Below, piece by piece: positions 1 through 60,800 of a stretch of DNA of 64,000 nt. The number at the start of each line of letters is the position of its first letter. Within the stretch, counting starts at the first letter, position 1. The translations under genes and the position numbers were made by a program. The notes below the pieces were generated by a model, which saw nothing but the letters and a program-made list of their open reading frames with translations, was not told the DNA's origin and searched no databases. Source of the stretch: Macrostomum lignano (Eukaryota). The stretch spans positions 1 through 64,000 of the forward strand of contig NIVC01001727.1 of the NCBI GenBank assembly GCA_002269645.1. Direction: 5' to 3'.

Positions 1-8251
<8,251 letters not shown>

Positions 8252-18878: not shown

Positions 18879-19027
18879 TTGGGCACTTCCATTACCGAGT
18901 AACTTGCAAATGGTAACGCAAGTTACTTTTTCGTAAAGCATTCCTTACGCAAGTTACTTTTTTATTTTAGTAACGGAGTAACGGTAAGTTACTCAAATTT
19001 TGGAAGTCCGTTACAGTTACTTTGCAA

Positions 19028-19730
19028 GGTAAGGGGTAAAACACTACCCGAGGGGTGGGGTGGCGGGCTACCCGATGATTTTAGGTGTCTACCCGCTTCA
19101 AATTGTCCAGAAAATGCGCCTAACTTATGCAGCTTCTAGTGTGGATTTTTTTAGGTGAAAACTGAAAGATTATGATGAAATTCACGTTTATTTTTGTTGG
19201 TAGTGTTTTACTCCAAAAAGCTACCCAAAACTACCCGACCCCTACCCACGTCATTGAGAATTGAAAATCAATAGCTAAGCTTACTTTTATATCTTCTGCC
19301 ATAATGTATAATATCAAGTGGTTTTAACGTGTATGAGCAAAGTTAGGGTAATGGGTAATTTGTTTTACTGTATTTTACTTTCGAATTTTTTAATAGGCAT
19401 TTTCGTTTACGTTTGACTTAGTTATTGTGTAGCCCGTTAAGCTAGCGTAAGGTGCAAACTAATATTAAAGCATCGTTGTTTAGTTGATGCATAGTATAGA
19501 AAATGAATTACCTCTAATAGAGGCTCGGTATATTTTTGCCTCAATTCAAAGTGAATTTCACTGTAGAAGTTTTTTATGGTTAACATTAAATAAATTTAAT
19601 GTTTAAATTAATTAAATAATTATTTTCAATTACTCAATACTCAAATACTCAAATACTCAATTAAATACTTAAATTAAAATCATCGGGTAGCCTGTTACCC
19701 CATTTTTCGGGTAGTGTTTTACCCTTTACC
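19028..19730. mobile_element. Non-autonomous Mutator-like (MULE) element
   Basis: About 55 bp imperfect TIRs (GGTAAGGGGTAAAACACTACCCGA...GGCTACCCGATGATTTTA) and exact 9-bp TSD ACTTTGCAA at 19019-19027 and 19731-19739. Confidence 0.78.
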
Positions 19731-20133
19731 ACTTTGCAACAATTGCAATATCTCTAAATATAAAAATCAAAACTCTGTGTGTGTGTGTGTCTGTCTGTGT
19801 GTGGACAATTTTGATCGCTATGGACTCCCAAACCACTCAACCAAATGACACCAAATTTTACACCCACCCTAAACTCACTACGGAGAATGTCTTAGGCTAC
19901 CTTTAAATTTCCTAAATTTGAGTCTTCCTACCTCAAAGTGCAAAAAACTGCTCAAAATGCGCGATTTTTTTACTAAAGCCTCCTTAGCGCCGCTCCACTT
20001 CTACCGATCCTCTTCAAATTTGACACAATCAATTTTCAACTATTTTGACACAATCGTGTAAAATTTCGAGTCTCAAAGTTAATCCTGAACGGCGCTGTGC
20101 ACTTTTAAAGTTTGACTGTTTTTTTCAGCGAGA

Positions 20134-22139
20134 CAGCCACCCCAACCTCCGCCCGCCTGCCTCTTTCCCGATCTGGGCAAAGGGTGTAAATGGGTTTTAA
20201 AATGACTAACTTTCGGCTGCCATAGTTTGCTCCACGTGAAGCGATTGACTTCTAACTTAACACAATTCTTCTTTGATTCATTCTCTGTCTAAATGTAAAG
20301 TTTCAACTCTCTAACTCAATCAGAACAGAAACTGTAAGCATGTGAAGTTTGTCTGCTTTTTCTGTTGTTTGTGCCACTCACTCACTCATTCCCCAGAGCC
20401 AGACGAAGGGTCAGGCGATAGGGCTCAATGTACATAGCGAGTGTACAGTGTTTTGGAATAACTTTTTAATAGCCTTCTCTGTACCCGCGACTGCGATTAG
20501 AAAGGCGTGGAGAGGAGAGACAGTTTAGCGAGAGATTCAAACCACTGTCCTCTGTATAGACAAGTCTGCAGCAGTTTAACTGTGGATGGCAAATCAAGAG
20601 TCAAGACAATGGTGGGATGGTTTGTAAAAATAGCGAAAAATAAATGAATAACAACTGATTACAATGCAATTCTACTAAATCAGTTAGTTACAGCATGAAG
20701 CTTTCAACATTAAAATTCGCATAAGGTAACTTTAAAATTTAAATGGCTCCTAAGAAATGCGTATTTCCCTTGGTTGTTAGACTGCTGCAGAGTGCAGACT
20801 TTGGTGGTGGAGCTGGAGATACACAAATTTCTCTCAAGGGCTGCTAATTGGCCAGAAAGATGACGTGATTAAAGGATAAGAAATGATAACAGCCATGCGA
20901 GTACTACGTCCCACAATTCCACTAACTGGCTTTTGAAGCAGGGATTGGCAGATTTTTATCTCAAAGGCCAGATAAAGAATCCAGCCCATGGCTGTGCCTG
21001 CGGGCCAGATGAGAGTGAAAAGGAAAAGGAATAGACTATTAGATAGAAAGAGAGTAGGGGCGAGAGGGGGCGAAGAGAAACGATAGAAGATAACGCGAGA
21101 GACGAGGGGTTAAGGAGAGCCTGCAGAGAATATGAGCAGGAGAGGCAGCCACCCCAACCTCCGCCTCTCTCTCCCTTATCTGGCGAGATGTGGAAAAGGT
21201 TTTAAAATAGACTAACTTTCGGCTGTCATAAGTTTGCTCCACATGAAGCGATTGAATTCAAACTTGACACAATCCTTCATTGACTCATTCTCTATCTAAA
21301 TGTTAAGTTTCAACTCTGTATCCTAATTAGGACAGAAACTATAAGCATGTGAAGTTTGTCTGCTTTTTCTGTTGTTTGCCGCTCACCCAACTCATTCCCC
21401 CAGACGAAGGATCAGGCGATAGGGCTCAATGTACATAGCGAATGTACAGTGTTTTGGAATAACTTTTTAATAGCCTTCTCTGCACCCCCGCGAGTGGAGA
21501 GGCGTGGAGAGGAGAGAGTTTAGTGAGAGATTCAATTTCAAACCACTGTCCTCTGAATAGACAAGTCTGCAGCAGTTAAACAAGGATGGCAAATCAAGGC
21601 GATGTGGGATGGTTTGTAAAAATAGCGAAAAATTAATGAATAACTGATTACAATGCAATCCTACTAAATTAGTTACACCATCAAAATTTTAACATTAAGA
21701 TTCGCATAAGATAACTTTAAAATTTAAATGGCCTCCTAAGAAATGCGTATTTCCTTGGTTGTTAGACTGCTGCAGACTGTGGTGGTGGAGCTGGAGAATG
21801 GAGATACACAAATTCCTCTCAGGGCTGCTAATTGGCCAGAAAGATGACGTGATTAAAGCATGAGAAATTATAACAACCATGATAGTACTACGTCCCACGA
21901 GGGCCGGATTGCTATTGCGAAGTTTCAAAGGACCCGAGGGCCGGATTGCTATTGCGAAGTTTCAAAGGACCCGAGGGCCGGATTGCTATTGCGAAGTTTC
22001 AAAGGACCCGAGGGCCGGATTGCTATTGCGAAGTTTCAAAGGTCCCCATGATAGTACTTTCGAAGCAGGGATTGGCAGATTTTTATCTCAAAGGCCAGAT
22101 AAAGAATCCAGCTCATGGCTGCGGGCCAGATGAGAGTGA

Positions 22140-22150: not shown

Positions 22151-23370
<1,220 letters not shown>

Positions 23371-31075: not shown

Positions 31076-34216
<3,141 letters not shown>

Positions 34217-35621: not shown

Positions 35622-38600
35622 ATGCAATCAGCTGTCAGTGCTGAGCAGTTGGCTATAGACGAACCGGCAACTCCTATAGAAGACGCAGACTTGCCCAGCA
35701 GTGAAGAGTCTGTGGATAATGCCGATCCAGCTGCTAAAGATGTAGATGAAGATGCCAATGAGGAGCATGAGGACACTGACAATGCTGCTGATGCTGATGA
35801 GTGCAAAGAGTCGCCCGAATGGCAGGTGAAAGCCTGTCCAGATTTTGCGGCAGCTTGCTCATTCCTTGGCCAGTTCGGATCGGACCTGGGCGTGACGCTG
35901 ACCTTCGCCCAGCTGGCGAAATGCGCGCTGTCGGGTCAGAATCCACAGTCCAAGCACCATCACTCGTCGCCCAGTAAAAGCTGGATTAATTTGCACGTTC
36001 GTTTATTAAATCGTTTGCGCTATTGCGTCAAAGAGGACAAATGGGAGAATGGCTTGCGCAAATTTTGCTCAGCAGTTGATGCGGATACAGCGTCAGCCAC
36101 CGCGGTTGCCTCAGCTCTTGGCGTTGTTGACGCAGCCGCCGCGGCGACAACGCCGCTGATGCTGTTGCTGGAGCCGGGCGGCTACGCCAGTCTGGGCTAT
36201 GCGGAACGGCTGCGCATCTTTCGCAGCCTGTTGGAGTGCCAGTTTGATAGAAATGTCAAGCTGAAAGCCAGAACTAACGCTATTAAAGCGGAGGAGCTCA
36301 GGCAGAAACCCATTGGCCAAGACATGGCCGGCTGTCAGTACTGGCTGCTCACCGACTCCGAGTACAGCGTGCTGCTCTATAAAGAGGATTCCGAAGCTGA
36401 CGACTCCGCTAGGCTGACTCTGGAAGCTGACAGTGTGGAAGCTATTCGACAGTTGTTGGTTCAGCTGCGATCTTGGACCGATCCGCGAGCTGTGCTGGAC
36501 ACTCTGAGAGCGTCGGCCTTGTCTGCCGCTCTCATCAGTGGCAGCGGCAGCAGCGGCAGCAGCAGCAAAGATGCCACGCCACCGCCGCAACCGCCACCAA
36601 AAGAGAATGGCGCAGCCGTGAGCAAACTTGAGACCGTGCCGGAGGATGTTAAAGAAGAGGAAGCTAAGCTGGAGCCTGAGCCAGAAACAGCTGAGCCCGT
36701 TGCTAACCAAGCCAAGCCTGAACCGGTTAAGTCTGAAGACAATAACGAAGAGAAGGTCGACGTGAAACTTGAAGAAGAAAATATCAAAGCGGAAGAAGAA
36801 TTGTCAACTCCAGTTAACAAGGGTCGCAAATGCAAAGCGGATTTATCTGTGGCTGATGAGGCCGAGCAGCCAGCTGCCGCCACTGACGATAGCGGGCTTC
36901 GTCGATCGTCGCGCGTGCGCAAGCAGGTGACGCCGTTTGTCATCCAGCAGGAGCCGGCCAGCGCTAAGAAGCGAGGCAAACTGGCAACCGCTGACAGCGG
37001 CGAAGATCAAGGCGACAGTGAGAAGACGGCTTCGCCAACTGCCAAAGCTTCTGCTAAACGGCAGAAACAGCAGCGAAAGTCCGACGGTACGAGCTACTGA
37101 ATGTGTCTGTTTTTGTAGATTTCTAATATTCTATTTTATTCAATCAGTGTAGCTTGAACTCAATTTGTAGCTTGAAACCCGTCATTCGTTTCACAAAGTC
37201 GCATTTGTCTGGGGTCTCTTATTTCATATTTTACCTGTGTTACCTGCAGCAGATTTTGGGCGCTACTTGGCCCAGGTACCGTTTTCAACGGGGAAGTTTT
37301 GAGGTCATGCAATTTGGAGCTTGTGCAATCATTATACTCTACTTCATAAGTAGTGCAGTACGCATATTTATACCATTTTCTCACCCTTCAACAGACAAGG
37401 CGCGCAAGCTCAAACTAGCCGCCAAGTCGCCGAGCAAAGCTAATAAAAAGCTCGCTAAAAAGCGGGCCAATAAGAAATTGGCCAAAGCCGCCGCCCACAA
37501 GAAGGCTAACGGTGTCGGCGTTGGCGCTAAAAAGCGACGCGGCGGCAATCCGTGGGAGCGCGGCGCCAGCAGCTCGGAGGAGGACGAAGAAGCCGAGGCG
37601 GATTTTATTCAGGCTTTGGACGCGGCCGATGAAGAGGAGGACGATGAAGGCGCGGATGCTGGAGCCATGTCTGACGACAGCTGGACTGACAGGCCAGAGT
37701 CCGACTTTGAGGTAGCTTTTTTGCTTGAAGTGTGAATCACTTGTATCCTGACTCTCAAGTCCTGAAGTTAGAAATCCAGATCTTCTTGCATATCCAAAGT
37801 GGGATTTCTACCGCAATCCCCAAGTAGGGAGTCCTCTAATCCTCAATTTGGGTTTTTCCCAGATACCCAAGTTATGGATTTCCACTCAAATCCTCAGATT
37901 GGGATTCCTGCTCAAATCCTCAGATAGGGGTTCCTGCTCAAATCCTCAGATTGGGATTCCTGCTCAAATCCTCAGATTGGGATTCCTGCTCAAATCCTCA
38001 GATTGGGATTCCTGCTCAAATCCTCAGATTGGGATTCCTGCTCAAATCCTCAGATTGGGATTCCTGCTCAAATCCTCAGATTGGGATTCCTGCTCAAATC
38101 CTCAGATTGGGATTCCTGCTCAAATCCTCAGATAGGGGTTCCTGCTCAAATCCTCAGATTGGAATTCCTGCTCAAATCCTCAGATTGGAATTCCTGCTCA
38201 AATCCTCAGATTGGGATTCCTGCTCAAATCCTCAGATTGGGATTCCTGCTCAAATCCTCAGATTGGGATTCCTGCTCAAATCCTCAGATTGGGATTCCTG
38301 CTCAAATCCTCAGATTGGGATTCCTGCTCAAATCCTCAGATTGGGATTCCTGCTCAAATCCTCAGATTGGGATTCCTGCTCAAATCCTCAGATTGGGATT
38401 CCTGCTCAAATCCTCAGATTGGGATTCCTGCTCAAATCCTCAGATTGGGATTCCTGCTCAAATCCTCAGATTGGGATTCCTGCTATATGGACGCCGGTGG
38501 CTGCAATTGTGGGATTTTTTGCTGATGTAGCTTGAAATCTCATTTATGTAGATAGAAATCCCAAGTATCCCATTGATGTAGCCTGACATCCCAAATATCC

Positions 38601-41600
38601 CACTGATGTAGCTTGAAATCCCAAATATCCCATTGATGTAGCTTGAAATCCCAAATCCCATAGATGTAGTCTGACATCTCAAAAATCCCATTGATGTAGC
38701 TTTAAATCCCAAATATCCCTAGAGTTTTATTAAACTCGTTCATCTTTGATTTAAAGCTGGTTAAAACTATGCGATCCCAACTGCTCTCCCTCGCCAAAGG
38801 ACGCGGCCCTGTCCGAGTCGGACTCAGAACACGAGTGCCGCGGTCGGAACTATCTCCGTCAGCGCAAACGCCAGCAACAGCTGCTGGCCGAGGCGGCCGC
38901 CGGCCCGCCTTGTCCCTGCGTCCGCTGCGGCAAAGAAGACCTGCCGGAGTGGCTGCTGTTGTGCGATAGTTGCGATGTAGCTTGGCACGCCATGTGCTTG
39001 AGGCCTCCGCTGTTTCTCATACCTACTGGCGATTGGTTCTGCCCCGTTTGTCAGCATAAGAGCCTCTGCGACGCTTTAGAAAGCAAAGTGACGGAGTTGG
39101 AGCAGCAGCAGAAGCAGCGCGTTGCTAAACAGAGGATGCAGGTAAATTTCTGCTTTCTGTAGTTTTCTTTCGATACATATCGGCAGAAAATTGGTTTAGT
39201 TGCTCCCATCTCATCTCGGTTTGATTTTATTTGTTTTTCGATGCATATCGGCAGTAAATTTGTTTAGTTGCTCCCATCTCGGTTTGATTTTATTTGTTTT
39301 TCGATGCATATCGGCAGTAAATTTGTTTAGTTGCTCCCATCTCGGTTTGATTTTATTTGTTTTTCGATGCATATCGGCAGTAAATTTGTTTAGTTGCTCC
39401 CATCTCGGTTTGATTCTATTTGGTTTTTTCGATACATATCGGCAGTAAATTGGTTTAGCCGCTCCCATCTCGGTTTGATTCTTTTTGCTTTTTGTTAGCA
39501 AGAAATCAGATTTAATTTGGCTCTGGTGCATCGGGTAGATTTTTTATTCGTATTTCGATACATATCGGCATTGTCAAAAATATCTGCTAACTCAACAGGA
39601 GCGTCTCAGCTACGTCAGCATCTCAGTTGGCAACATCATTGAGAGCTCGCGGGCCGGGCGCGCAGGCGGCGGCTTCGCTCACTACACCGAGGGCGGCTCC
39701 GATATTGAGGGCGCGTCCGACTCCCGGTCCGGTTCCGGTAGTTTCGGCTCTTCCGGTAGCGGAAGTGGCTCGGGTTCCGGTAGTAGCGAAGAGGAATCTT
39801 CGGACGAAGAGGCGTAAGTTACTCAGTGCTTTTTTTAGAGTTTGAGGATAATTGGGATTTTGAATCCAAATTATTATAATTTTGGGACTTGAACTTTCTC
39901 CATTGCATACCGGTATTGTGAGCGTTCAAAGCTTTCTCGATGGAATATTTACGATTTCGGACTTCGATACGACATATGGGATTTCCATCTACGTCAATGG
40001 GATATTTTGGATTTCTATCTACGTCAATGGGATGTTTGGGATTTCTATCAACGTCAATGGGATATTTGAGATGTCAGGCTACATAAATGGGATATTTGGG
40101 ATATCAGGCTGCATCAATGGGATTTGGGATTTCAAGCTACCTCAATGGGATTTGGGATTTCAAGCTACATCAATGGGATATTTGGGATTTCAAGCTACAT
40201 CAGTTGGATATTTGGGATGTCAGACTACATCAATGGGATATTTGGGATGTCAGACTACATCTATGGGATTTGGGATTTCAACCTACATCAATGTGATATT
40301 TGGGATGTCAGACTACATCTATGGGATTTGGGATTTCAAGCTACATCAATGGGATATTTGGGATGTCAGACTACATCAATGGGATTTGGGATTTCAAGCT
40401 ACATCAATGGGATATTTGGGATGTCGGACTACATCTATGGGATTTGGGATTTCAAGCTACATCAATGGGATATTTGGGATTTCAAGCTACATCAATGGGA
40501 TATTTGGGATGTCAGACTAAATCTATGGGATTTGGGATTTCAAGCTACATCAGTGGGATATTTGGGATGTCAGGCTACATCAGTGGGATATTTGGGATTT
40601 CTATCTACATAAATGGGATTTCAAGCTACATCAGCAAAAAATCCCACAATTGCAGCCACCGGCGTCCAACCCGCCAGTCGGCCCGCACAGCCAACGTGAA
40701 CTACCGTTTCGAAAACTACGACGCCATGATTAAAGAGGCCATCGAAGAGGACGACAAGTACCGCCTAGTCAAGGAGAACCCGGAGGCGGCAGCCGAAGCG
40801 GCAGCCGAGGCCCGGCGAGCCCGCAAGCGGCCTGGAGGCGGCAAAGACATGGAGAGCATCCTGGGCCCCGACTGGGACAAGAAGAAGCCGCCGTCGGCTG
40901 TTGAGGAGCCGCAGCCCAGCGCCAAGCCGGCAGCCGCGGATGCCCAGGAAGTCGCCACCGAAGACAGCCAAGAAGACGCAGCGGAAGCTGCTACAGCGGC
41001 GTCAAACGAAGAAGGCGACAATGACGGCGAGGAAAGCGACGTCGAAGGCGAGGGCGGCCGACCTGCACCGCCGGCTGCCACGGCGGCGGCCAAGCGGAAG
41101 CGGAAGCGCCTGGCCAAGCTGGGCGACACGGACAGCGAGGCCAACTCGGACGCTGACGAGCACCCGTCCGATGACGATTTCAAGCCGCCAAGCTCGGCCG
41201 ACACCGACGAAGATGACGACGATGAAGCTGGACGAGGCCGAGGCAACTCGTCCGATGACTCGTACAGCGGCGCCGAGTCCGAGGAGTTGAGCAGCGACGC
41301 GAGCTGGAGGCCGTCTGGCTTGGCCATCAGTTCGCGTCGGCAGTCGTCCAGGCTGAGAGCGGCGGCGGCGGCATCGTCAAGGTGAGAATTCCGCTATTTT
41401 AGATGATTTTTTTCATGGCCGATATGTTGCGAAAAAACTTTAAATTTGCATATAATAAGTGGCTTTATGGCGAACTTGAAACAGCCGATATGTAGCGTAT
41501 AACTATTTAAATTGGTATAATATGTGGCTTTATAGCGAACTTATAATGGCCGGTATGTAGCGTATAACTATTTAGATTATCATAATGTGCAATTTAAATT

Positions 41601-43473
41601 AAAATTTAAAGTTAAAAGGGCCTGTAATTTGACTGCCATTCATATTAGTTGGAATTGCACGGCTTTAAGGTTAAAGTTCAATTAACCGATATGTAGCGTA
41701 AAATACTTTCCAGGGCAGAATTCGTTATAGTTATATTATAACTACTATTTCCTATTCGCCAGGCACAAGCGGTCGTCGCACGGCAGCAAAAGCAGAAAAG
41801 ACAAGAAGCACAAAAGGAGCAGCCGGCATCGGAGTGGCAGCGCAGGAGGCGGCGGCCGTCACAGTCGTAAGCGTCGGCGTAGACGCGAAGACGACGATGC
41901 GGAGGACGATGAGGACGGAGACGACTGGCGACCCGGCGGAGGCGGCGAAGGTCGACGTCGCTCCCGGCACCCGCCGCCGGCTAAGCGAGGCCGACGGCGA
42001 GGACGCGGCCGCAACGAATACGACTCAGATGACGACATTGAGGAGTCTGAGGAGGATCAGTCCGAGGATGAGGCGCGGCGCCCGACTCGGCGAGCTGCAG
42101 CCCGGCGGGTCGTGTTCCAGGAGGACGAGGAAGACGAGGAAGAAGAAGAAGAAGAAAATGAAGCAGAGGCGGCACAGAAGCCGGGAAAAGCTAAAGAAGA
42201 AAATGAGGAAAAAGCTGAAGCAGAAGACGAGGCAGACGAAGACGCTCATGGCCGGCCAAAGTTGCAGATTGCTGGCAGGCAAAAGCAGCTGCACAAGCGT
42301 CGAGCCGCTTGTCTTGAAGACAGCGACGAAGAGTGGAAAGGGTCAGATGAAGAGGAAGAAGAAGAGGAAGAGGAAGAAGAAGAGGAGGAAGCAGAGGAAG
42401 AGGAGGAAGAAGAACCGGCTCCAGCAAAGGCAACGGTTGCTAAGCAGCAAAAGCTAGCCACGATTGATGATCGAAATAAAGAAAAAGAAGAAGAAAATGA
42501 GAAACAACAAACAGCAGCAGAAGAGAAGGCCGATGCCGAGACGGCAGCAGAGTCTAAACAGACTGAAATAGTTGATGAAGCTAAGAATAAAGCCATTGAA
42601 GAAGAAGTAGCTGAGACAGCGGTTGCTGCTGCTCCAGCGGAAACTGAAGACAATGCGGAAGACGAGGAGCTGCCGGATAAGGAGGCCGAGCTGCGCGAAG
42701 CCGAGCTGCGGATGGCGCAGGAGGCGGCCAGCTCGATGCCGCAGCAGCCGCCTGCTGTCCAGCGGCTGGAAGCGCCAGCAGCAGAAGCAGCCGAGCCTGT
42801 CCCCACTGCGGCAGCAAAGCCAGCAGCAGCAGCAACAACAAGCAGGACTCAGCAGCAAAGGAAGCAGAAACAGCAGAAACAGTTGCAGAAGCAGCAACAG
42901 CAGCAGCAGCAGCAATCTATTCAACAGCCTTCAATACCTTCGCAGCCAATTCAACCGCCAGTGTCTACAGTTGGTCACGTGATGCCGCCTCAGCCGCCGC
43001 CGCATCCGCAGTACATGCCGCAGCAGCAGCAGCCAGTCATGCCGCAACACCAGCCGCACATCGTGTCCACAACAGCTGCCTGCCCGCCGCCGCCGCAGCT
43101 GCCAATACCTGCCGATATTAGAGAGCTCTACCTGCCGTCCTGCACTTACGGCGGGCCCAGCTACCAGCCTCAGCATCCGCAGCCATATCCGGTGTACACG
43201 GCTTATCAGCCGCAGCCGCAGCTTCCTCCCATGCAGGCCGGTAGCATGCTTGCCGAGCTGAACGATTTGGCACCTCCGCCGCCGCCGCCGCCAGCGCCGC
43301 AGATGCTGCCTCCCATGCCTGCTGTAGTCAGCAGCAGCAGTGGTGCCAACAGTGCCGGAGGAGCAGCCGGCGGGACGCCGTTCTATATTGACTCTCTGTT
43401 GCATCAGCAGCAGCCGGCGCCAACTTATCCGCCTGCCACCGGGGCTTATGGACAGCAGCATCAGCCGTTTTAA
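35622..43473 (+). CDS. RSF1: Remodeling and spacing factor 1 (DDT/WHIM region + PHD finger), 1591 aa
   Basis: Exons 35622-37086, 37395-37711, 38800-39141, 39599-39813, 40656-41381, 41763-43473 join in frame (4776 nt). CPDFAAACSFL, LLECQFD, PIGQDMAGCQYW, PHD CDSCD...H...CLRPPL...GDWFCPVCQH, ERLSYVSIS and YRFENYDAMIKEAIE resemble recalled human RSF1. Confidence 0.92.
37890..38484. repeat. 26 bp minisatellite CTCAAATCCTCAGATTGGGATTCCTG, about 23 near-identical copies
   Basis: Read directly; RSF1 intron 37712-38799. Confidence 0.95.
38488..38718 (-). repeat. Inverted copy of about 40440-40668 (RSF1 downstream intron end, acceptor and 13 exonic nt)
   Basis: TGGACGCCGGTGGCTGCAATTGTGGGATTTTTTGCTGATGTAGC... 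is the reverse complement of ...GCTACATCAGCAAAAAATCCCACAATTGCAG|CCACCGGCGTCCA. Confidence 0.93.
38800..39141 (+). CDS. RSF1: RSF1 PHD-finger exon
   Basis: ccaaag|GAC ... ATG CAG|GTAAAT, 342 nt; C4HC3 PHD motif. Confidence 0.92.
39165..39480. repeat. 63 bp repeat x5
   Basis: TCGATGCATATCGGCAGTAAATTTG recurs at 63 bp spacing in RSF1 intron 39142-39598. Confidence 0.9.
39970..40635. repeat. 25/30 bp minisatellite TGGGATATTTGGGATTTCAAGCTACATCAA, about 23 copies
   Basis: Read directly; ends about 20 nt before the RSF1 acceptor at 40655. Confidence 0.95.
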
Positions 43474-47280: not shown

Positions 47281-48593
47281 ATATACCAATAGACTGTAGG
47301 CATTCATTTTGGCGCCTCAGCCACTCCACTTTGGCGCTGCAGGCGCTATTTTTTAGCGCCCTAAAGCACAATTATTGATTTCCATAACGGGTCACAAGGT
47401 GGGGTGGGAGGGAGACAAAGCATCGGCATGTCCCCCTCCCTATCCTCCCGGAGGCGACGCCCCTGAACCCTTGCCTTGCCTTTTGCCTTGGACACCTGGT
47501 TTTTGCCGGGCTACATTGGAGCTCGATCGACTTCGAATAACCTCCATTCGCCCTCTATATCGACCTCAATCCATGAAAAAGCCCATGCCTTAACTGCCTA
47601 GCATGTAGCTGTAATACTGTAATTCCGACCTGGCCTTGCTTGCCTCTACGGCGGAGGCTGAGGCAGCCTGGTAGCAGCTGCGGCATCGGTCGGGCTAGCA
47701 GTGAACATATCAAGAAGACAAAGGTGATGACCTGTTCCTGAGGAGCTGCCTATCAACATCACCTGCCGGGACGCTGACGGTCGTGCAGCAACTCTACCTC
47801 GCTGCACACGCTTCACGCTCGACGGTCTTGTGCCCAGCCTTCGGCCCAGCGGTCTTGTGCTAGGAAAGCTGATCTGGCACCGCCCTTTGTGAACGACGGT
47901 GTGCCTGAGTTGTAGCTTTTGTTGCTGTAATTCCGAATTGTGTTATTAATTGAGGACAGGCCCAATGTTTTTGTGCAATTGTTTATAAGATACTGGCGAA
48001 GATCCTGTTGTGAATGATATTTTAATTATTTGTTTTACTGCTTGTGACAGGCACAAACGCCAAGCTACAGTTAAATATTTTAATTATTTGTTTTACTGCT
48101 TTTAACAGGGCCAAGCTGAAAGCTACGCAAAGAGAAGTTTACGGTTAAAATTTATTATTAACTAACTACATGTATAGGTATTGAATAACTAACTTTTTCG
48201 AATGGCTAACTACATGTAAATGCAGCTAGGACGCCATTGTGCACTTTATTTCACAGTTAAATTACACCATAAGCATTGTCAAACGGAACGCTGATAAAAG
48301 AATATTGGAAGATTAATAAATTAATAAATCAAAGATATCCGATCCATCGTTTAATTGAAAATTAATTCAGATAACCATTCTACAAAGAATCGCTGGTTGA
48401 TATTGAATAGAGTAAAACAATTATTTTCGAATCGGGACTTGAATCTACTATTTTATCAAAGTTTTACCAGATCTAGGCGAAATCAAAGGTTACGAGAGCT
48501 GGTCAAGTATTGCAATAGTACGTGACTGTATCATTCTAATGAAAATCCGAACAATTGTTATACCGCTATCAGCTATAAACAAAATCCGGACAC

Positions 48594-48806
48594 TCAGGCG
48601 GGACTGTCCTGAGCTGGCATGATCACCGCCGCCTGCTTCTGCTCCAGCGCAGCACCGAACGGTACGCCTCGTTTCGGCACGTACTCGCCTACGCGGGGCA
48701 CCATGGTGATGCAGTCGATGATTGGGCAGACAGAGGCGCACAGGGTGCAGCCGGTGCAGTCGTCTGTCACTCGTGGCAGATGCGTCTCGGCGTCAAACTC
48801 GATGGC
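48594..48806 (-). CDS. DPYD: DPYD last exon (4Fe-4S motif)
   Basis: gccag|GCC ATC GAG ... TGA. Confidence 0.93.
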
Positions 48807-51800
48807 CTGGCGGTGGTGGCGGCGGGGGTGGCAGTGCAGGGAATGAGTCACCCTAGACAACTCTCTGTAAGAGTGCACCGTAGACAACTCTAACCTCTGT
48901 AAGACACCCTAGACAACTCTAACCTCTGTAAGACACCCTAGACAACTCTAACCTCTGTAAGACACCCTAGACAACTCTAACCTCTGTAAGACACCCTAGA
49001 CAACTCTAACCTCTGTAAGAGTGCACCCTAGACAACTCTAACCTCTGTAAGAGTGCACCCTAGACAACTCTAACCTCTGTAAGAGTGCACCCTAGACAAC
49101 TCTAACCTCTGTAAGAGTGCACCCTAGACAACTCTAACCTCTGTAAGACACCCTAGACAACTCTAATCTCTGTAAGACACCCTAGACAACTCTAACCTCT
49201 GTAAGACACCCTAGACAACTCTAACCTCTGTAAGACACCCTAGACAACTCTAATCTCTGTAAGACACCCTAGACAACTCTAACCTCTGTAAGACACCCTA
49301 GACAACTCTAACCTCTGTAAGACACCCTAGACAACTCTAACCTCTGTAAGACACCCTAGACAACTCTAACCTCTGTAAGAGTGCACCCTAGACAACTCTA
49401 ACCTCTGTAAGAGTGCACCCTAGACAACTCTAACCTCTGTAAGAGTGCACCCTAGACAACTTAACCTGATTACCTGATATCCCGAATCGTTGCAAGTCAT
49501 GTAGCACTTGCCGCAGTTGATGCACAAATCGTCGTTAACCAGAGCCACCACCTGCTGTTTATTATCGAGGTCGTAGTAGTTTCCAACCAGGCCGACACTG
49601 GCGCCAACAATGTCTGAAACTTTCGGAACTGGCTTCACGACCGGCCGCTGCCTCTGGGCCAAACCGGTTGAAGCCGGGTCAGGCTTGAGTAGGTCGCGAG
49701 TTCGAAGCAGCTCGTGCTCAAGCGCTTCCCTGCGCTGCTTGTAGGGCCCAAAGGCGGGCAGGGATTGGCCGGTAGCCAGCAGCGACTTGCCGCGCTGGTG
49801 CACCGGCGTTGGCGGGCTCTGGCCGGTCCAGTCCGCCAGGCCTGTTCCAGTTGAATGGGATAAATGGAGATTTAAGGTTTTCATTGGGCCTCGCTTCAGT
49901 CGTTAGAACAGCTGTGTTGTGTGTGCACTGGAGACACGTGGTCGAAAATGCCAAAACTGTTTGGCGTCAGGCAAGGCCAGCAGTCTAGTTCTTCCAGGTG
50001 GATTAATTAAAGTTGCTAGAGTCTCCGAATTGGTTGCTAGGGTCTTCGAATTGGTTGCTAGGGTCTTCGAATTGGTTGCTAGGGTCTTCGAATTGGTTGC
50101 TAGGGTCTTCGAATTGGTTGCTAGGGTCTTCGAATTGGTTGCTATGGTCTCGTATTTTGGTTGCTATGGTCTCGTATTTTGGTTGCTACGGTCTCGTACT
50201 TTGGTTGCTAGGGTCTCGTGTTTTTGTTGCCAGGGTCTCGTATTTTGGTTGCTCGGGTCTTTTTATCTTGGTCGCTAGGGTCATCGTATTTTGGTTGCAA
50301 CTCTTCGACTTGGTTGCTAGGGTCTCGAATTGGGTTGTTAGGTGTGCCTAATGGTTAGCTAAGAGCACCAAATATGTACAAAAGCGATTCTAGTAAAATC
50401 AACGAAAATGTGTACAATCTCACAAATAAAAAAATTAGACATCGGGCAAGAATTAGTTTGTAGTTTCTCAATAAACCTACTTGCAGTAGTCAAGCCAGAC
50501 AACTAGACCCCATCAGAAATTGACTCCCCCAATTTAATCATTCATCAATTTGACGGCAACATGCGCGAGCTGATAAGAGCGAGCAGCCGGTGCGAATCAT
50601 AAAATTCGCGTAATAAAGTTGATAAGAATTTTTTACAACTTTCGCCCATCGGTTCTAAATTGCAAGCTACAGAGCAGACAACCGGGAGGGGGTAGTAGCC
50701 GCCTGGATTAAAGATAAAAAATATGATTAAAGCTGGAAAAGTACGCGGTTTAAGACTTGAAAAGACACTGGATCAAGGACCATCTATTATTGGAAACTAT
50801 TGGAAATATACTCGTAGTATTATTGGAAATGGCCAATATCCACTTCTCTCTAATCTCCTCTCCTTTCGCCTCTCCTCTCCCGTTGTCTCCTTACGTATCC
50901 TTTATTCTCTTGCCTCTCCTTTCTCCTATCTCTCTTCTCTATCTCCTCTCTCCCCTCGGGCCCTCTCTCCCCATGCAACAGTTTCCCCACCTGGCCCTTG
51001 AGGTAAAATACTTTGCCGCCCCTCTGAAGTAATTAACTCTACTCGATAGCCCTATTAACCGATGAAGCAGCCAAAACGGCAAGATGCTGAATCAGACTGG
51101 GATTTCCAGCTCATCAGATGATGAATGGTCATTTAGCTTTACGGCGAAACCGACCTTTGTCTAGAAATACTCGTGATTTAATCTACTTTCCTTTGACCCG
51201 TTTTGCCGAGAAAAATCTGCACTACAAAAATCAGATTCTGGGGAACGTACTAAAATGAGGGCGTATAGGTTTCTCACTGGGACTGCAGCGATCATTTCTA
51301 AGAAAATGGAGTGTAGCCTGACATTAGACACCAGACATTAGACACCAGACATTAGACACCGGACATTAGACACCAGACATTAGACACCAGACATTAGACA
51401 TTAGACATTAGACACTAGACATTAGACACCAGACATTAGACACCGGAGATTAGACACCAGACATTAGACACCGGACATTAGACACCAGACATTAGACACT
51501 AGACATTAGACACCAGACATTAGACACCAGACATTAGACACCAGACATTAGACACCAGACATTAGACACCAGACATTAGACATTAGACATTAGACACTAG
51601 ACATTAGACACCAGACATTAGACACCGGAGATTAGACACCAGACATTAGACACCGGACATTAGACACCAGACATTAGACACTAGACATTAGACACCAGAC
51701 ATTAGACACCAGACATTAGACACCGGAGATTAGACACCAGACATTAGACACCAGACATTAGACACCAGACATTAGACACCAGACATTAGACACCGGACAT

Positions 51801-54800
51801 TAGACACCAGACATTAGACACTAGACATTAGACACCAGACATTAGACACCAGACATTAGACACCAGACATTAGACACCAGACATTAGACACCGGACATTA
51901 GACACCAGACATTAGACACCAGACATTAGACACTAGACATTAGACACCAGACATTAGACACCAGACATTAGACACCGGACATTAGACACCAGACATTAGA
52001 CACCAGACATTAGACACCGACATTAGACACCAGACATTAGACACCAGACATTAGACACCAGACATTAGACACCAGACATTAGACACCAGACATTAGACAC
52101 CAGACATTAGACACCGGAGATTAGACACCAGACATTAGACACCAGACATTAGACACCAGACATTAGACACCGGAGATTAGACACCAGACATTAGACACCG
52201 GACATTAGACACCAGACATTAGACACTAGACATTAGACACCAGACATTAGACACCAGACATTAGACACCAGACATTAGACACCAGACATTAGACACCAGA
52301 CATTAGACACCAGACATTAGACACCAGACATTAGACACCAGACATTAGACACCAGACATTAGACACCAGACATTAGACACCAGACATTAGACACCAGACA
52401 TTAGACACCGGACATTAGACACCAGACATTAGACACTAGACATTAGACACCAGACATTAGACACCAGACATTAGACACCAGACATTAGACACCAGACATT
52501 AGACACCGGACATTAGACACCAGACATTAGACACTAGACATTAGACACCAGACATTAGACACCAGACATTAGACACCAGACATTAGACACCAGACATTAG
52601 ACACCAGACATTAGACACCAGACATTAGACACCGGAGATTAGACACCGGACATTAGACACCAGACATTAGACACTAGACATTAGACACCAGACATTAGAC
52701 ACCAGACATTAGACACCAGACATTAGACACCAGACATTAGACACCAGACATTAGACACCGGAGATTAGACACCAGACATTAGACACCGGACATTAGACAC
52801 CAGACATTAGACACTAGACATTAGACACCAGACATTAGACACCAGACATTAGACACCAGACATTAGACACCAGACATTAGACACCAGACATTAGACACCA
52901 GACATTAGACACCAGACATTAGACACCGGACATTAGACACCAGACATTAGACACTAGACATTAGACACCAGACATTAGACACCAGACATTAGACACCAGA
53001 CATTAGACACCAGACATTAGACACCAGACATTAGACACCAGACATTAGACACCAGACATTAGACACCGGAGATTAGACACCAGACATTAGACACCAGACA
53101 TTAGACACCAGACATTAGACACCAGACATTAGACACCAGACATTAGACACCAGACATTAGACACCAGACATTAGACACCGGACATTAGACACCAGACATT
53201 AGACACTAGACATTAGACACCAGACATTAGACACCAGACATTAGACACCAGACATTAGACACCAGACATTAGACACCAGACATTAGACACCGGAGATTAG
53301 ACACCGGACATTAGACACCAGACATTAGACACCAGACATTAGACACCAGACATTAGACACCGGAGATTAGACACCAGACATTAGACACCGGACATTAGAC
53401 ACCAGACATTAGACACCGGAGATTAGACACCAGACATTAGACATCAGACATTAGACACCAGACATTAGACACCAGACATTAGACACCGGAGATTAGACAC
53501 CAGACATTAGCCATCAGACATTAGACACCAGACATTAGACACCAGACATTAGACACTGGAGATTAGACACCAGACATTAGACACCAGACATTAGACACCG
53601 GAGATTAGACACCAGACATTAGACATCAGACATTAGACACCAAACATTAGACACCAGACATTAGACACCGGAGATTAGACACCAGACATTAGACACCAGA
53701 CATTAGACACCAGACATTAGACACCAGACATTAGACACCAGACATTAGACACCAGACATTAGACACCAGACATTAGACACCAGACATTAGACACCGGACA
53801 TTAGACACCAGACATTAGACACCAGACATTAGACACCAGACATTAGACACCGGAGATTAGACACTAGACATTAGACACCGGACATTAGACACCAGACATT
53901 AGACAAATAGACGAGACAGAGCCACATAAACCTTAAAATACTGAAATCTCAAGCAACACACGATGATGCATCAGCTGATAGCAGATAGTAACTAAAACAA
54001 ACTGACTGAGCAGAGCTGCTCAAGCACTGCAGCTAAGCTAGAGAGGAGAAAGCTGCAGCAGAAGGCCCAGGCAACGCCAGCCTGTCAGAGCTGTCAGCCT
54101 CGCAGCCCTATCGATTTTCGGCCTCAGTTTCAGCTGCTGAGGGACACGCCGGGAGTAAAAAAAATCGCCAGCGCAATGAAAGCCCATGGAGACTGGAGCA
54201 CATCCTCCTCACCACTGCCACTGCCTAATCCTAGCAGGCAGAGTCCGCTAGACAGGCAGGAATGAAGTAGAAGAGAATTATTGTAGATAATGCTAATTCA
54301 CCGCCAATGCTGGCTCGCTTCTTTTTCGAGTTCGCTCCGAATTCCCCTGGCAACTGCATAACCCTAAGCGCAGGGATTGTACTAGGCGAAATCGCGCTGA
54401 TTTGGGCAATTTTTGAGATCTAGCGATATGGGAAATGCAATCTGTATGCTCCCAACTGTCTTCCTGAGGGGATTCTGCAATGAAAGAATCCAGTTTGAAA
54501 TTTGAACTCATTACTCAGGCCGCGATTCCTTGTTCCGTTTTGATTTTAAATCAGTTTTTAATGAGAATTAAATTTTTGTTAAGCCTTTTTTCGACGGGAA
54601 CACTGCCCTAACACCCACCCCAAAGCACCCTTCCCAAACCAAACACACAAGAAACACCCACCCCACAACACCCACCCCAAAACACTCACCCCAAAACACC
54701 CACCCCACAACACCCACCCCAAAACACCCACCCCAAAACACCCACCCCAAAACACCCACCCCAAAACACCCTTACCGTCCAGGGACTTCAAGTACAGCAA

Positions 54801-57800
54801 GGTTTTCAATCCGGTGACATAGTCGTCAATCAAAGTGAAGTCCTGATTCTGCACAGCGCTGCACACCTGTGAATTTGGAATGGATATTGTGCAGAATTTA
54901 GACTTCAACTCGACTGCGCAAATACAATACGAGCGGACTGAAACGATCGCCAGCTGCCCCGTAGAAAAAAGCCAAATAGGCTGCAAAATTTCCTAACCTT
55001 GTCGGGCCAAAATGCGGTATACTGCTGGAGAAGCCCTAGCTAATTAAAAAAGACGAGGCCTTATTGCTGGATTGCGTTTCGCGGAGGTAAGAAGGCCTCT
55101 TGTGCGTCAGGATCAGACAAATTCAAGGCGATGAGAGCTGCAGGGTGAAGGGCTGCCCAAGGTTTGGGTGCAGCTCGCTAGCTGACTATTTATCTAGCTG
55201 TCAAAGATACAGTCAAGTACAGTTGAGTTTCTATCGAAATTATGAATTATGAAATTATGAAACTGGGAAAGAAGTTGGGATAGAAGTTGGGAAAGATTCT
55301 AGTATGGATGCTTAGAGACCGTTTTCGCATGTGAATAAATGGCGATTTAAGTATTTGTATGCCGCTGGCGGAATTGTCTACTGCATAGATAAGATTCCGG
55401 GTCCCTGACTCTCCGGCTGTATGACTCTCCAACTGTCTGACTCTCCAACAGTCTGACTCTCCGACTATCTGACTCTCCAGCAGTCTGACTCTCCGACTAT
55501 CTGACTCTCCAGCAGTCTGACTCTCCGACTGTCTGACTCTACAACAGTCTGACTCTCCGACTATCTGACTCTCCAACAGTCTGACTCTCCGACTATCTGA
55601 CTCTCCAACAGTCTGACTCTCCGACTGTCTGACTCTCCGACTGTCTGACTCTCCGACTGTCTGACTCTCCGACTGTCTGACTCTCCGACTGTCTGACTCT
55701 CCGACTATCTGACTCTCCCAATGTCTGACTCTCCGACTATCTGACTCTCCGACTATCTGACTCTCCGAATGTATGACTCTCCGACTATCTGACTCTCCGA
55801 CTGTCTGACTCTCCGACTATCTGACTCTCCGACTGTCTGACTCTCCAACAGTCTGACCCTCCGAATGTATGACTCTCCGACTGTCTGACTCTCCGACTAT
55901 CTGACTCTCCGACTGTCTGACTCTCCGACTATCTGACTCTCCGACTATCTGACTCTCCGACTGTCTGACTCTACGACTATCTGACTCTCCGACTGTCTGA
56001 CTCTCCGACTATCTGACTCTCTGACTGTCTGACTCTCTGACTGTCTGACTCTTCGACTGTCTGACTCTCCTTTTGTGAAAATTCAGGGGAATTTTTGGAG
56101 AATCTTTGAAAATCTCTGGAAATCTTTGGAAATTTTGCAAATTTATATGGCAAGAGTTGGAAAAATTTCCTGATCCAGACGCCAGCGGTAGATGCTACTC
56201 AAGTCTGCGGAAACTCTGAACTCTGTCACAAGCACCTGGTGCAATGCAGGCATATTCGGCTTAGCAATTGTGAATGAAGGGTGGCGAGAAAGCGGGCAGG
56301 CGCTTCCTGTGTTGAAGCGCGGTGCCTCTCCTGAATCTGCAATTAAGTCGGCTGCGAAGAATTCGTAGGCGTTGGCGGCAGCTGGGATTGAAGAAAGCGC
56401 ATGTCCGCTCAGGGGATTAGCGGCAGTGGGGGGTTGGAGACCAAGGCGATCTTGAACAGGAATTTGGAGTAGGCCAACTCCCCATGCTGCTTAAAGACTT
56501 TTGCAGGGGTTTAGGTCAGAAACTCACACCGTAAGTCGGAATCATGGGCATTAGAAGGACACTACAAGCGTACACTCGCGAATCTTTAGATTATAGATTA
56601 GCTCTTTTGCGTAGCGCTAAATGAGGTTTCTCCATAGACAAGTTCAGTTGAGAAATATTCGCGCTAGAAAAAGACGCAAAAGAGATAAGAACAACAGAAG
56701 TCTCGCCGGAGCCAGGCTTGCTTGCCGGGCCAAAGTGGGAATAAAAACGTTTCTGTAGTCTATGGCCGGTCCCGAGTGATTTAGATAAAATTCTGTAGTC
56801 TATGGCCAGGCTCAAGTGAGGAATAAATACAACTCTGTAGTCTATGGCCAGGCTCAAGTGAGGAATAAATACAACTCTGTAGTCTATGGCCAGGCTCAAG
56901 TGAGGAATAATTACAACTCTGTAGTCTATGGCCAGGCTCAAGTGAGGAATAATTACAACTCTGTAGTCTATGGCCAGGCTCAAGTGAGGAATAATTACAA
57001 CTCTGTAGTCTATGGCCAGGCTCAAGTGAGGAATAAATGCAAGTCTGTAGTCTATGGCCAGGCTCAAGTGAGGAATAAATGCAAGTCTGTAGTCTATGGC
57101 CAGGCTCAAGTGAGGAATAAATGCAAGTCTGTAGTCTATGGCCAGGCTCAAGTGAGGAATAAATGCAAGTCTGTAGTCTATGGCCAGGCTCAAGTGAGGA
57201 ATAAATGCAAGTCTGTAGTCTATGGCCAGGCTCAAGTGAGGAATAAATGCAAGTCTGTAGTCTATGGCCAGGCTCAAGTGAGGAATAAATACAATTCCAT
57301 AGAGCAGAGCTTACAAAAGTTGGTTCAAGCTAATAGAGGTTTTTGTTATTATATGTATATTCATAAGTTATTTTTACTCAGCCAAGGAAGAGCTCGCCTC
57401 TCCGGATTTCGGGTCCTGTCCTCCTTGACTAGTCCTCTGGGACTTAGCAGCTCCCTATCCAATATTTTCTCTTCCTCTCGCTGACCTTCGCTTTTCGGTT
57501 TTTATTCGATTTTAAAGAAGAATTTTTTACTTCGCACAGGGGAAATCTGAACTGCGACACCGCGTGCCAAGTTAAAAAGGGTCCGGACTGGCTACAGAAA
57601 ATGGAATTTCAGTTTTCTCGAGTTAACCAACCAACTGCGTGGGCTGGCAGCTTGCAGGAAGTCCGCCATGGAATTTAATTTCATTCCTTTTTCGATGCCT
57701 CGCACAGGCTGGGACACCTGGAGAGCGCGTGTCTGCGGCGGGCCCGAGCGTCAGTAACTACGGGGAGCTGACCGACAGACAAGAAAGTACATTTAGCAGG

Positions 57801-60800
57801 CGCCAAACAGGATTATATGGGAATCCGTGGACGGCACTTAATCCATTTGTAGCGAATTCGAATCGATCTAGGCCGCCGATTCAATATAAGCCTTATTCAA
57901 GCCTGCAACTAATCAATTATTCAGTTAGCTTCTTCAATAACGGGCCTGGAAAAGATAGCAGCATTCGGCAAGACAAAATTCGATTTCCGTGCTGTTACTT
58001 GCTGAGACGAACTTGCACGAGTTGGTACAAGTTGGTACAGACAGAGAAGTCCTTATTCTTTTCAGGAGAAAACTATCTACATTAACTGCCCTGTCTGCTG
58101 CTGTGAAATCAATGCCTCAACGTGTTTCACTCAATAAATAAATTTATTACTCTGATAAAATTTTCTAATATAGGCTGTCCAAAAATAAGATTTATAGGTC
58201 AAAGTTATCGTTTAGGCTTCACAATCAATGGTTCCCACCGATTTTTATGTTTCAAGGTCAAGGCTACACTGATTGAGAAGTTTCAAGGTCAAGACTACTG
58301 ATTGAGAAGTCTAAAGGTCACGGCTACTGATTGAGAAGTCTAAAGGTCAAGGCTACTGATTGAGAAGTCTAAAGGTCAAGGCTACTGATTGAGAAGTTTC
58401 AAGGTCAAGGCTACTGATTGAGAAGTTTCAAGGTCAAGGCTACTGATTGAGAAGTCTAAAGGTCAAGGCTACTGATTGAGAAGTCTAAAGGTCAAGGCTA
58501 CTGATTGAGAAGTCTAAAGGTCAAGGCTACTGATTGAGAAGTCTAAAGGTCAAGGCTACTGATTGAGAAGTTTCAAGGTCAAGGCTACTGATTGAGAAGT
58601 CTAAAGGTCAAGGCTACTGATTGAGAAGTTTCAAGGTCAAGGCTACTGATTGAGAAGTCTAAAGGTCAAGGCTACTGATTGAGAAGTTTCAAGGTCAAGG
58701 CTACTGATTGAGAAGTCTAAAGGTCAAGGCTACTGATTGAGAAGTCTTAAGGTCACGGCTAGTGATTGAGAAGTCTAAAGGTCAAGGCTACTGATTGAGA
58801 AGTCTAAAGGTCAAGGCTACTGATTGAGAAGTTTCAAGGTCAAGGCTACTGATTGAGAAGTCTAAAGGTCAAGGCTACTGATTGAGAAGTCTAAAGGTCA
58901 AGGCTACTGATTGAGAAGTCTAAAGGTCAAGGCTACTGATTGAGAAGTCTAAAGGTCAAGGCTACTGATTGAGAAGTTTCAAGGTCAAGGCTACTGATTG
59001 AGAAGTCTAAAGGTCAAGGCTACTGATTGAGAAGTTTCAAGGTCAAGGCTACTGATTGAGAAGTCTAAAGGTCAAGGCTACTGATTGAGAAGTTTCAAGG
59101 TCAAGGCTACTGATTGAGAAGTCTAAAGGTCAAGGCTACTGATTGAGAAGTCTTAAGGTCACGGCTAGTGATTGAGAAGTCTAAAGGTCAAGGCTACTGA
59201 TTGAGAAGTCTAAAGGTCAAGGCTACTGATTGAGAAGTTTCAAGGTCAAGGCTACTGATTGAGAAGTCTAAAGGTCAAGGCTACTGATTGAGAAGTTTCA
59301 AGGTCACGGCTAGTGATTGAGAAGTCTAAAGGTCAAGGCTACACTGATTGAGAAGTCTAAAGGTCAATGCTACTGAATACTGATCGAGAAGTTTCAAGGT
59401 CACGGCTACTGATTGAGAAGTCTAAAGGTCAAGGCTACTGATTGAGAAGTCTAAAAGTCAAGGCTACTGATTGAGAAGTCTAAAGGTCACGGCTACTGAT
59501 TGAGAAGTCTAAAGGTCAAGGCTACTGATTGAGAAGTCTAAAGGTCACGGCTACTGATTGAGAAGTCTAAAGGTCAAGGCTACTGATTGAGAAGTCTAAA
59601 GGTCACGGCTACTGATTGAGAAGTCTAAAGGTCAAGGCTACTGATTAAAAGTTTACCGATGAAGGTTACCGGTTGAAAAGTTTAAAAACCAGAAATCTTC
59701 TACAAAACTTTGGAAGCATTATTGTAAAAATAAACCAACGAGTCAGCTCTCAAAGTCAAAGCTCACCTGCAGCACTGACGCGCCGGCGTACAGGAACTGG
59801 ATGCCCGCGTCCGCCGAATCGATGCCGCCCGTAGCCAGGATAGGAAAGCCGGGCATGTCACGCGCAATGTTCGACACGGCACGCAGGGCGATCGGGCGAA
59901 TGGCGTTGCCAGACACGCCGCCGTAGGTGGTTTTCTGCTGGCGGCCGATTCGCGGCCACGGTCGGCCATTTGCGTCCAGCCCCATCAGGCCGGACACCGT
60001 GTTGGTGGCCGTGACTCCGTCGGCGCCTCCCTCCTTGGCGGCGCGGGCAATGTCCAACACGCTAGTGACGTTCGGCGTCAGCTTGGCGAACACGGGAATC
60101 TTTACGGCCGCCTTCACCCAGCGGCAGATGTTGCGCACCAGCTCGGGAGACTGGCCGCAAGCCAGGCCCATGCCCTTCTCGCCCATGCCGTGCGGGCAGG
60201 ACATGTTTAGCTCGAGCGCGTCCGCCCCAGCCTGCTCGGACATGACGGCCAGCTGCGTCCAGTCCTCCTCTGAGTAGCCGCACATCACCGACGCGATGAG
60301 AACCTTCTCGGGGAAGTCGCGCTTCAATTCGGTGATGCTGCGGCACCAGTAGGCGGCCCGCTTCTCGCTGATCAGCTCAATGTTCAGGAAGGAGCCCTGG
60401 CCAGGCCCGTAGTTGTGCCCGGAAGTGGTGCCCCGGACAATCCTGGGCGACACGTTGGTGATGATGTCCTTGTCCAGCACGAATGTTTTGGTCAGGGCGA
60501 AGCCCCAGCCAGCTTCGAACGCCTTGCGAATCATCGCGCTAGTCGTGGTTGGCGGCGCGCTGGCCAGACCGAACGGGTTCTCGAAGCGCAGGCCGCACAT
60601 CTGCACGCTGATGTCAACTGAATCGATTGGCGAGTAGAACTTCGGCAGCCGCGGCTCCACAGGGATCTCCTCGGAGGCGGAGTCGCTGCCGACGGACTGC
60701 AAGTAGCGGTGCATGCTCCAGGCAGCCATCTTGCCGTCGTTGACGGATTCCACCGTCGTCTGGGCGACTCCGGCCACGTCGCCGCCAGCGAACACCCAGG

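Follow-up and report, generated by a model that had tools for sequence, protein, structure and literature searches.

A putative local inverted copy of a splice acceptor region in an RSF1-like gene of Macrostomum lignano

We analysed a stretch of 64,000 nucleotides (nt) of Macrostomum lignano DNA (GenBank assembly GCA_002269645.1, contig NIVC01001727.1, positions 1 to 64,000), here called the window, whose positions serve as coordinates throughout this study. The subject is an inverted repeat within a gene resembling that for RSF1 (remodeling and spacing factor 1), with one arm in intron 2, the other at the boundary of intron 4 and exon 5, and exons 3 and 4 lying between them. We consider it probable, at about 0.6, that the arm in intron 2 is a young local inverted duplication of the arm in intron 4 and that the arrangement is a neutral or slightly deleterious by-product. 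The direction of copying, from intron 4 to intron 2, is suggested by parsimony.

Results

Structure and alignment of the two arms

An inverted pair of arms had been proposed for this gene in an earlier reading of the same DNA, referred to below as the original prediction, and explicit alignment confirms it, setting 38488-38719 against 40467-40668. The left arm is 232 nt long: 38 unique nt come first, and about 6.5 minisatellite units of 21-30 nt come after them. It begins 3 nt past the end of an unrelated array of 26-nt repeats and ends 80 nt upstream of exon 3. The right arm comprises the end of the intron 4 minisatellite, a 36-nt unique intron tail, the acceptor AG and 13 nt of exon 5, and the earlier description of the arm content as repeat units, the AG at 40654-40655 and 13 coding nt was correct. 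The segment 38488-38626 shows 3 mismatches to the reverse complement of 40530-40668, and 38657-38719 shows 4 to the reverse complement of 40467-40529, with an extra 30-nt unit at 38627-38656 in the left arm. In total, the arms agree at 195 of 202 positions (96.5%, with 7 substitutions), and their outer 52 nt are identical. We considered whether this identical end could be a mark of constraint and rejected the idea, since such a run has a probability of about 0.16 at the overall divergence (0.965^52). The order of unit variants is also common to both arms, running from the 38 unique nt through a 21-nt short unit to the ATAGAA, CCTGAC, CTTGAA and TCTGAC variants. This shared order argues that a block was copied and that the two arrays did not grow independently.

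The outer 44-mer of the pair, TGGACGCCGGTGGCTGCAATTGTGGGATTTTTTGCTGATGTAGC, occurs exactly twice in the window, at 38488-38531 on the forward strand and at 40625-40668 on the reverse strand, and two matches of it were found in 0 of 100 shuffles. The local alignment of the arms scores 175 versus 13.9 +/- 2.2 in shuffled sequence, and they form the only strong inverted pair in a self-BLAST that covered all 64 kb (E = 1e-72). A separate repeat search returned them as arms of 139 nt with 98% complementarity (38488-38626 and 40530-40668), along with many other registers, because the 28/30-nt minisatellite makes up most of each arm. A scan of metagenome DNA gave no match to the unique 32-mer of the arm. 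No known RNA family was found at the arms in the 9 kb searched, where the only two family matches lay away from the arms and scored far below their gathering scores.

Origin of the left arm

A block copy from the boundary of intron 4 and exon 5 is the simplest explanation of these data, because the copy includes a functional acceptor together with coding bases, and because its unit variants follow a colinear order. The right arm stands in a functional context, with an acceptor that is in frame and a conserved RSF1 block directly after it, and the array on the right is about four times the length of that on the left. A block of at least 202 nt, made up of the last 5-6 units of the intron 4 minisatellite, the 36-nt tail of that intron, AG included, and the 13 nt of exon 5, would have been copied in reverse into intron 2, at the edge of the unrelated 26-nt array. 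The copying would have been based on replication or repair, through a template switch, microhomology-mediated break-induced replication (MMBIR) or gap repair, and would have involved no transposition. Later, one 30-nt unit may have been gained in the copy or lost in the source by slippage, and the 7 substitutions would have arisen.

No target-site duplication (TSD) was found around the left arm or around the whole pair, the flanks of the left arm sharing only the 2 nt TA, and the outer flanks of the pair, ...CCTGCTATA and ACCCGCCAG..., do not match each other. Neither terminal inverted repeats (TIRs) within an arm nor Helitron-type features (5' TC, 3' CTRR, a subterminal 3' hairpin and insertion between A and T) were found at the arms. 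The outer end of the arm reads TGGACGCC..., or ...GGCGTCCA on the other strand, and the only palindrome nearby is a 3-bp GCC/GGC. A transposon origin of the foldback, TIR or Helitron type was rejected on these features. With no TSD and no transposon ends, a local copy is the better origin, and the original prediction, which had likewise seen no TSD and preferred a local event to a transposon, stands in this respect. Its specific appeal to template switching fares less well: microhomology amounts to 0 nt at the outer junction, and the inner junction offers at most an ambiguous 4 nt, TAGA, provided that one indel is accepted.

Features of the host gene

By its sequence, the host gene is RSF1-like, with a PHD finger followed by a conserved coiled segment and a YRFxEYD..AI block. 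Its six exons (35622-37086, 37395-37711, 38800-39141, 39599-39813, 40656-41381 and 41763-43473) are in frame across the whole model, each intron is bounded by GT-AG, and the PHD finger is recognised by Pfam (PF00628, E = 5.5e-9). An exhaustive HMMER search with exons 3-5 as the query gave 5178 representatives, of which the best (E = 1.6e-35, 41% identity) aligns through the conserved RSF1 block, and the top matches that carry a name, from Dreissena and Clonorchis, are annotated as "Remodeling and spacing factor 1". Word-indexed protein searches returned PHD-finger orthologues no closer than 40-46%, and an exact look-up of eight open reading frames of the window returned no match. Residues near the PHD finger resemble flatworm and mollusc orthologues most, which is a weak hint. 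The gene model, Pfam and the homologues together bear out the RSF1 label, the exon coordinates and the phases given originally. The main features of the gene and its repeats are collected in Table 1.

Table 1. Positions of the inverted arms, the host gene and the repeat arrays in the window
Feature	Position	Strand	Description
Left arm	38488-38719	+	Intron 2; inverted copy, covering the intron 4 3' end with 13 nt of exon 5
Right arm, presumed source	40467-40668	+	Final intron 4 minisatellite units, unique tail, AG and exon 5 nt 40656-40668
RSF1-like host gene	35622-43473	+	6 exons; coding sequence 4776 nt; product 1591 amino acids
Exon 3	38800-39141	+	342 nt; phase 0 at both ends; encodes the PHD finger
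Exon 4	39599-39813	+	215 nt; exons 3 and 4 (557 nt together) looped out between the arms
Exon 5	40656-41381	+	Initial 13 nt inside the right arm
Intron 4 minisatellite	39961-40621	+	About 22 units of 28/30 nt; most of intron 4
Unrelated 26-nt minisatellite	37748-38484	+	23 near-identical units at 37885-38484, degenerate units before
Degenerate relic of the 28/30-nt repeat	37137-37180	+	Intron 1; two TGTAGCTTGAA motifs in left-arm orientation
Intron 3 array	39168-39570		63-nt period
Intron 5 array	41418-41586		65-nt period

Only the acceptor at 40655/40656 keeps the gene model in frame; acceptors after the next two downstream AGs, at 40676-40677 and 40689-40690, were rejected because they shift the frame by 22 and 35 nt, which fixes the exon start at 40656. 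The initial 13 nt of the exon, together with the final 2 nt of exon 4, encode A-H-R-R-P, and the alignment shows that the conserved block xLRxRR..(V/S)YRFxEYDxxIxxAI starts directly after the 13 nt held in the arm. The pyrimidine tract of this acceptor, at 0.40, is the weakest in the gene, with intron 3 close to it at 0.45 and introns 1, 2 and 5 at 0.70-0.75, in agreement with the earlier description of an acceptor lacking such a tract. No AATAAA or ATTAAA polyadenylation signal, which could give a truncated isoform, was found in intron 4. In exon 1, the reverse strand of 36524-36612 gives a sub-threshold match to the Rfam family mir-6132 (40.5 bits, where the gathering score is 112; E = 8.5e-7); this match is probably compositional and reflects acidic-rich coding sequence.

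Minisatellites of the gene and the window

About 30% of the window (19.4 kb) consists of minisatellites, in about 31 different arrays with periods of 11-86 nt and lengths of up to 3 kb, and nearly every array is private to a single intron or spacer. Introns 2-5 of the RSF1-like gene, four of its five introns, and several introns of a dihydropyrimidine dehydrogenase gene each hold an array of their own. Such a density of intronic minisatellites is unusual, and the creation and movement of minisatellites are clearly frequent in this genome.

The 28/30-nt repeat and its core motif are confined within the 64 kb to the RSF1-like gene, and the intron 4 minisatellite is complementary, along its full length, to the repeats of the left arm. 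The relic in intron 1, whose two TGTAGCTTGAA motifs lie 18 nt apart, is closest to the terminal short unit of the arms and has a predicted pairing energy of -56 kcal/mol with the intron 4 array. The 26-nt array next to the left arm spans 600 nt at 98% identity; no continuation of it was found beyond the arm, and its kinship with the 28/30-nt repeat was rejected (z < 2). The arrays of introns 3 and 5 seem to be related to each other in inverted orientation. They contribute a second complementary pair, in which 39553-39585, the last intron 3 unit, 13 nt before exon 4, matches 41401-41434, the first intron 5 unit, 19 nt after exon 5, at 28 of 34 positions, with a predicted energy of -32 kcal/mol versus -14.9 +/- 3.2 in shuffles. 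This pair is interleaved with the main one and is only suggestive after correction for 30 intron comparisons.

Several other features surround the gene. About 1.5 kb upstream of its start, at 31076-34123 on the forward strand, lies a non-long-terminal-repeat retrotransposon fragment in which Pfam recognises a reverse transcriptase (PF00078) and an RNase H domain (PF00075); its reading frame is broken over at least two frames. The neighbouring genes, all on the reverse strand, are dihydropyrimidine dehydrogenase (48500-61900, where 59743-61854 is an exon of 703 amino acids and about 49420-49884 is a 4Fe-4S exon), a PSME4 (proteasome activator subunit 4) fragment with HEAT repeats (2578-4966) and a YhhN-family, TMEM86-like protein (10743-12245). 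Two direct copies of about 790 nt with 85% identity stand 1 kb apart, at 20130-20914 and 21142-21898, with a (GA)n tract of 1.1 kb after them at 22260-23360. Besides low-complexity (GA)n matches, the sole other inverted match in the self-BLAST is a pair of 65 nt at 83%, at 19022-19083 and 19675-19739, with a spacer of about 600 nt.

Predicted pairing of the arms in the transcript

Pairing of the arms would give a duplex of about 230 bp, with a predicted energy of -376 kcal/mol. The minimum-energy fold computed for 37712-40720 pairs 228 of the 232 nt of the left arm with intron 4 and places the acceptor AG and nt 40656-40668 within a perfect 52-bp helix. The original proposal that the arms could pair, loop out exons 3 and 4 and bury the downstream acceptor is borne out in this sense, as a strong predicted fold. 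Because the repeats of the left arm are complementary to the whole intron 4 array, several registers are possible, and the other registers give predicted duplexes of -165 to -270 kcal/mol. The intron 4 array starts 148-164 nt after exon 4, and in folds of growing transcripts the pairing appears when the 3' end is at about 40000-40100, that is, 190-290 nt past exon 4. The arrangement has the sequence characteristics of intronic repeats that promote circularisation, in that the arms are complementary, lie near the splice sites to be joined and favour pairing across introns.

Possible consequences for splicing

With intron 2 still present, a duplex of 110-230 bp could form once the first units of intron 4 had been transcribed. 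Fly introns have a median half-life of about 2 min at a transcription rate of 1.5 kb/min (PMC5762160). The distance from exon 3 to the intron 4 array is 1.2 kb, equivalent to less than 1 min, and intron 2 could therefore remain at that time if the kinetics are fly-like. Because the duplex draws the acceptor of exon 3 close to the donor of exon 4, some back-splicing into a 557-nt circle of these two exons would be the likeliest molecular outcome. The in-register duplex would also cover the weak exon 5 acceptor and could reduce its use. Skipping of exons 3 and 4 joins phase 0 to phase 2 and causes a frameshift with a stop 25 codons later, and a retained intron 4 brings a stop directly after residue 780; the circle size and the frameshifted junction in the original prediction hold on recalculation, which adds the position of the stop. 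Exon skipping and circle formation can also be linked via an exon-containing lariat (PMC4479058). Skipping, intron 4 retention and a lariat-linked circle may all occur.

Discussion

The alignment of the arms, the colinear order of their unit variants and the functional context of the right arm point to a local copy, and the question is then what such a copy means for the gene. We believe that the arrangement most likely arose as a by-product of the highly active minisatellite turnover, neutral or mildly deleterious in effect, and that this is much likelier than an evolved switch, because the copy is young and arrays are made and moved often in this genome. The original prediction proposed such a switch; spelled out, regulated arm pairing would choose among full-length RSF1 mRNA, a circular RNA (circRNA) of exons 3 and 4 and unproductive mRNA, either skipped or with intron 4 retained, and would thereby tune the dose of a remodeller subunit. 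We regard it as quite unlikely. In its favour are the geometry, the strength of the predicted duplex, the masking by that duplex of the weakest acceptor of the gene, and a second, weaker complementary pair beside the exon 4 acceptor and the exon 5 donor. The stops that follow skipping (after 25 codons) and intron 4 retention (after residue 780) also agree with it, as does the reported circRNA of human RSF1, which comes from other exons (PMC7986494). However, the copy has diverged by only 3.5%, and where minisatellites are made and moved throughout the genome a chance origin is to be expected; with two sequences alone, compensatory changes are not observable. A further elaboration appears very unlikely to us. 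In it, the inverted copy of the gene's own acceptor would serve as an antisense gate that pairs with the exon 5 acceptor, loops out the PHD exon and so sets the ratio of full-length mRNA, circRNA and unproductive mRNA, perhaps together with His-to-Arg editing at the second codon of exon 5; with the weaker intron 3/intron 5 pair it would make up a set of competing helices born of minisatellite turnover. Editing by itself is extremely unlikely to be the meaning of the arrangement. In that model, pairing of the left arm with the initial 13 nt of exon 5 would let ADAR carry out adenosine-to-inosine (A-to-I) editing at A40658, turning the His codon CAC into CIC, read as Arg, or hyper-edit the intronic arms. 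The complementary sequence lies two introns upstream of the site, however, and long perfect duplexes lead to promiscuous editing and not to site-specific editing. In favour of the model, the perfect 52-bp helix does include exon nt, and there are well-known editing sites that rely on complementary sequences in introns (e.g. PMC1660579, PMC4299485).

Other explanations concern the origin of the left arm itself. The sequence could be a dispersed repeat or a non-autonomous transposon with an internal minisatellite, Helitron/DINE-1-like or foldback-like, that was inserted separately into introns 1, 2 and 4 and from whose end the exon 5 acceptor and the first 13 nt of the exon were recruited. Three copies in one gene, in both orientations, would suit such an element, as would an outer end that is sharp, identical in both arms and coincident with the start of strong protein conservation. 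We nevertheless think this unlikely. The flanking TA is only 2 nt long and there is no TSD; there are no TIRs within the arm, no TC...CTRR ends and no 3' hairpin; and the other 60 kb or so of the window contain no copy despite about 30 other arrays. Moreover, the left copy is truncated within its array, and exonisation would need an in-frame acceptor by luck. An assembly artefact, a chimeric or misplaced inverted fragment, deserves mention because the arm abuts a 600-nt array of 26-nt repeats with 98% identity, which is an error-prone context for assemblers. It is exceedingly improbable, however, as the two copies differ by 7 substitutions and by one whole 30-nt unit, and the arm has the array on one side and, on the other, unique sequence continuing into exon 3, while both gene order and frame are intact. 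Artefacts from inverted reads are usually palindromes without a spacer at the ends of contigs.

The reading that we prefer, a young inverted copy from intron 4 in intron 2, also has to face several points that weigh against it. The residues A-H-R-R-P encoded around the 13 exon nt lie at the poorly conserved edge of the conserved block, and for this reason the acceptor could in principle have come with the repeat. The degenerate third copy in intron 1 implies that the sequence has spread more than once, which also fits a mobile or dispersed repeat. Template switching or MMBIR would be expected to leave microhomology at the junctions, but the outer one has none and the inner one has the ambiguous TAGA. 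As to the RNA, thermodynamic folds take no account of proteins or helicases, nor of fast co-transcriptional splicing.

Should the arm be real in the population, this locus would be a clean and datable natural case of a circRNA-competent architecture being born: one local inverted copy, its source and boundaries known and its divergence about 3.5%, within a chromatin-remodeller gene that is otherwise conserved. The locus could then offer a natural test of whether intronic complementarity of recent origin suffices for back-splicing or acceptor masking in vivo. Otherwise, it would be an ordinary structural by-product of a minisatellite-rich genome. The feature is of an ordinary kind with an unusually clear origin, and its newly born complementarity includes the gene's own splice acceptor.

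Comparison with known systems

The putative copying event resembles the four-point model of replication template switching and of fork stalling and template switching (FoSTeS)-MMBIR (PMC5453318, PMC7954356, PMC8794818), in which a nearby segment is copied as its reverse complement with no TSD. Such events also create a new inverted repeat and with it a potential RNA hairpin, as here. The published short-range template-switch loci that were examined (PMC5453318) involve a few tens of bp, whereas the block considered here is at least 202 nt and its source lies about 1.75 kb away. The present case also departs from the template-switch/MMBIR expectation in its junctions, where microhomology is absent or ambiguous.

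Foldback (FB) elements have long terminal inverted repeats made of short tandem sub-repeats. The arms described here are similar in being composed of tandem sub-repeats with a unique outer end. In contrast to foldback elements, however, two conserved host exons in the correct orientation stand between the arms, an outer end falls within a coding exon, a TSD is absent, and the arms are unequal, with 6.5 versus 22 units.

A circular RNA is known from the orthologous gene family. Human circRSF1 (hsa_circ_0000345) has been reported from exons 10-11 with a length of 1982 nt (PMC7986494), and no correspondence has been established between those exons and exons 3-4 of the gene described here.

The closest parallel for the predicted pairing is found in the DNAREP1_DM pair of Drosophila laccase2 and in human Alu pairs, which likewise have reverse-complementary arms in the flanking introns, near the splice sites that are joined (PMC4617980). 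In laccase2, about 100 nt of each flanking repeat, of which about 55 nt are mutually complementary, are sufficient for circularisation, and disruptive and compensatory mutations have established that base pairing is necessary; in human cells, about 40 nt are enough (PMC4617980). Arm length and complementarity in the RSF1-like gene are well over the 40-100 nt that sufficed in those experiments (PMC4617980), and the circle of 557 nt would be comparable with the Laccase2 circle of 490 nt, the latter being demonstrated and the former predicted from sequence. Unlike laccase2 and the Alu pairs, the arms here are not two transposon copies. They appear to be a local inverted copy of a gene-internal minisatellite that takes in a splice acceptor and coding bases, and because the copy includes that acceptor, the duplex predicted here, unlike those of laccase2 and the Alu pairs, would also cover the next acceptor of the gene.

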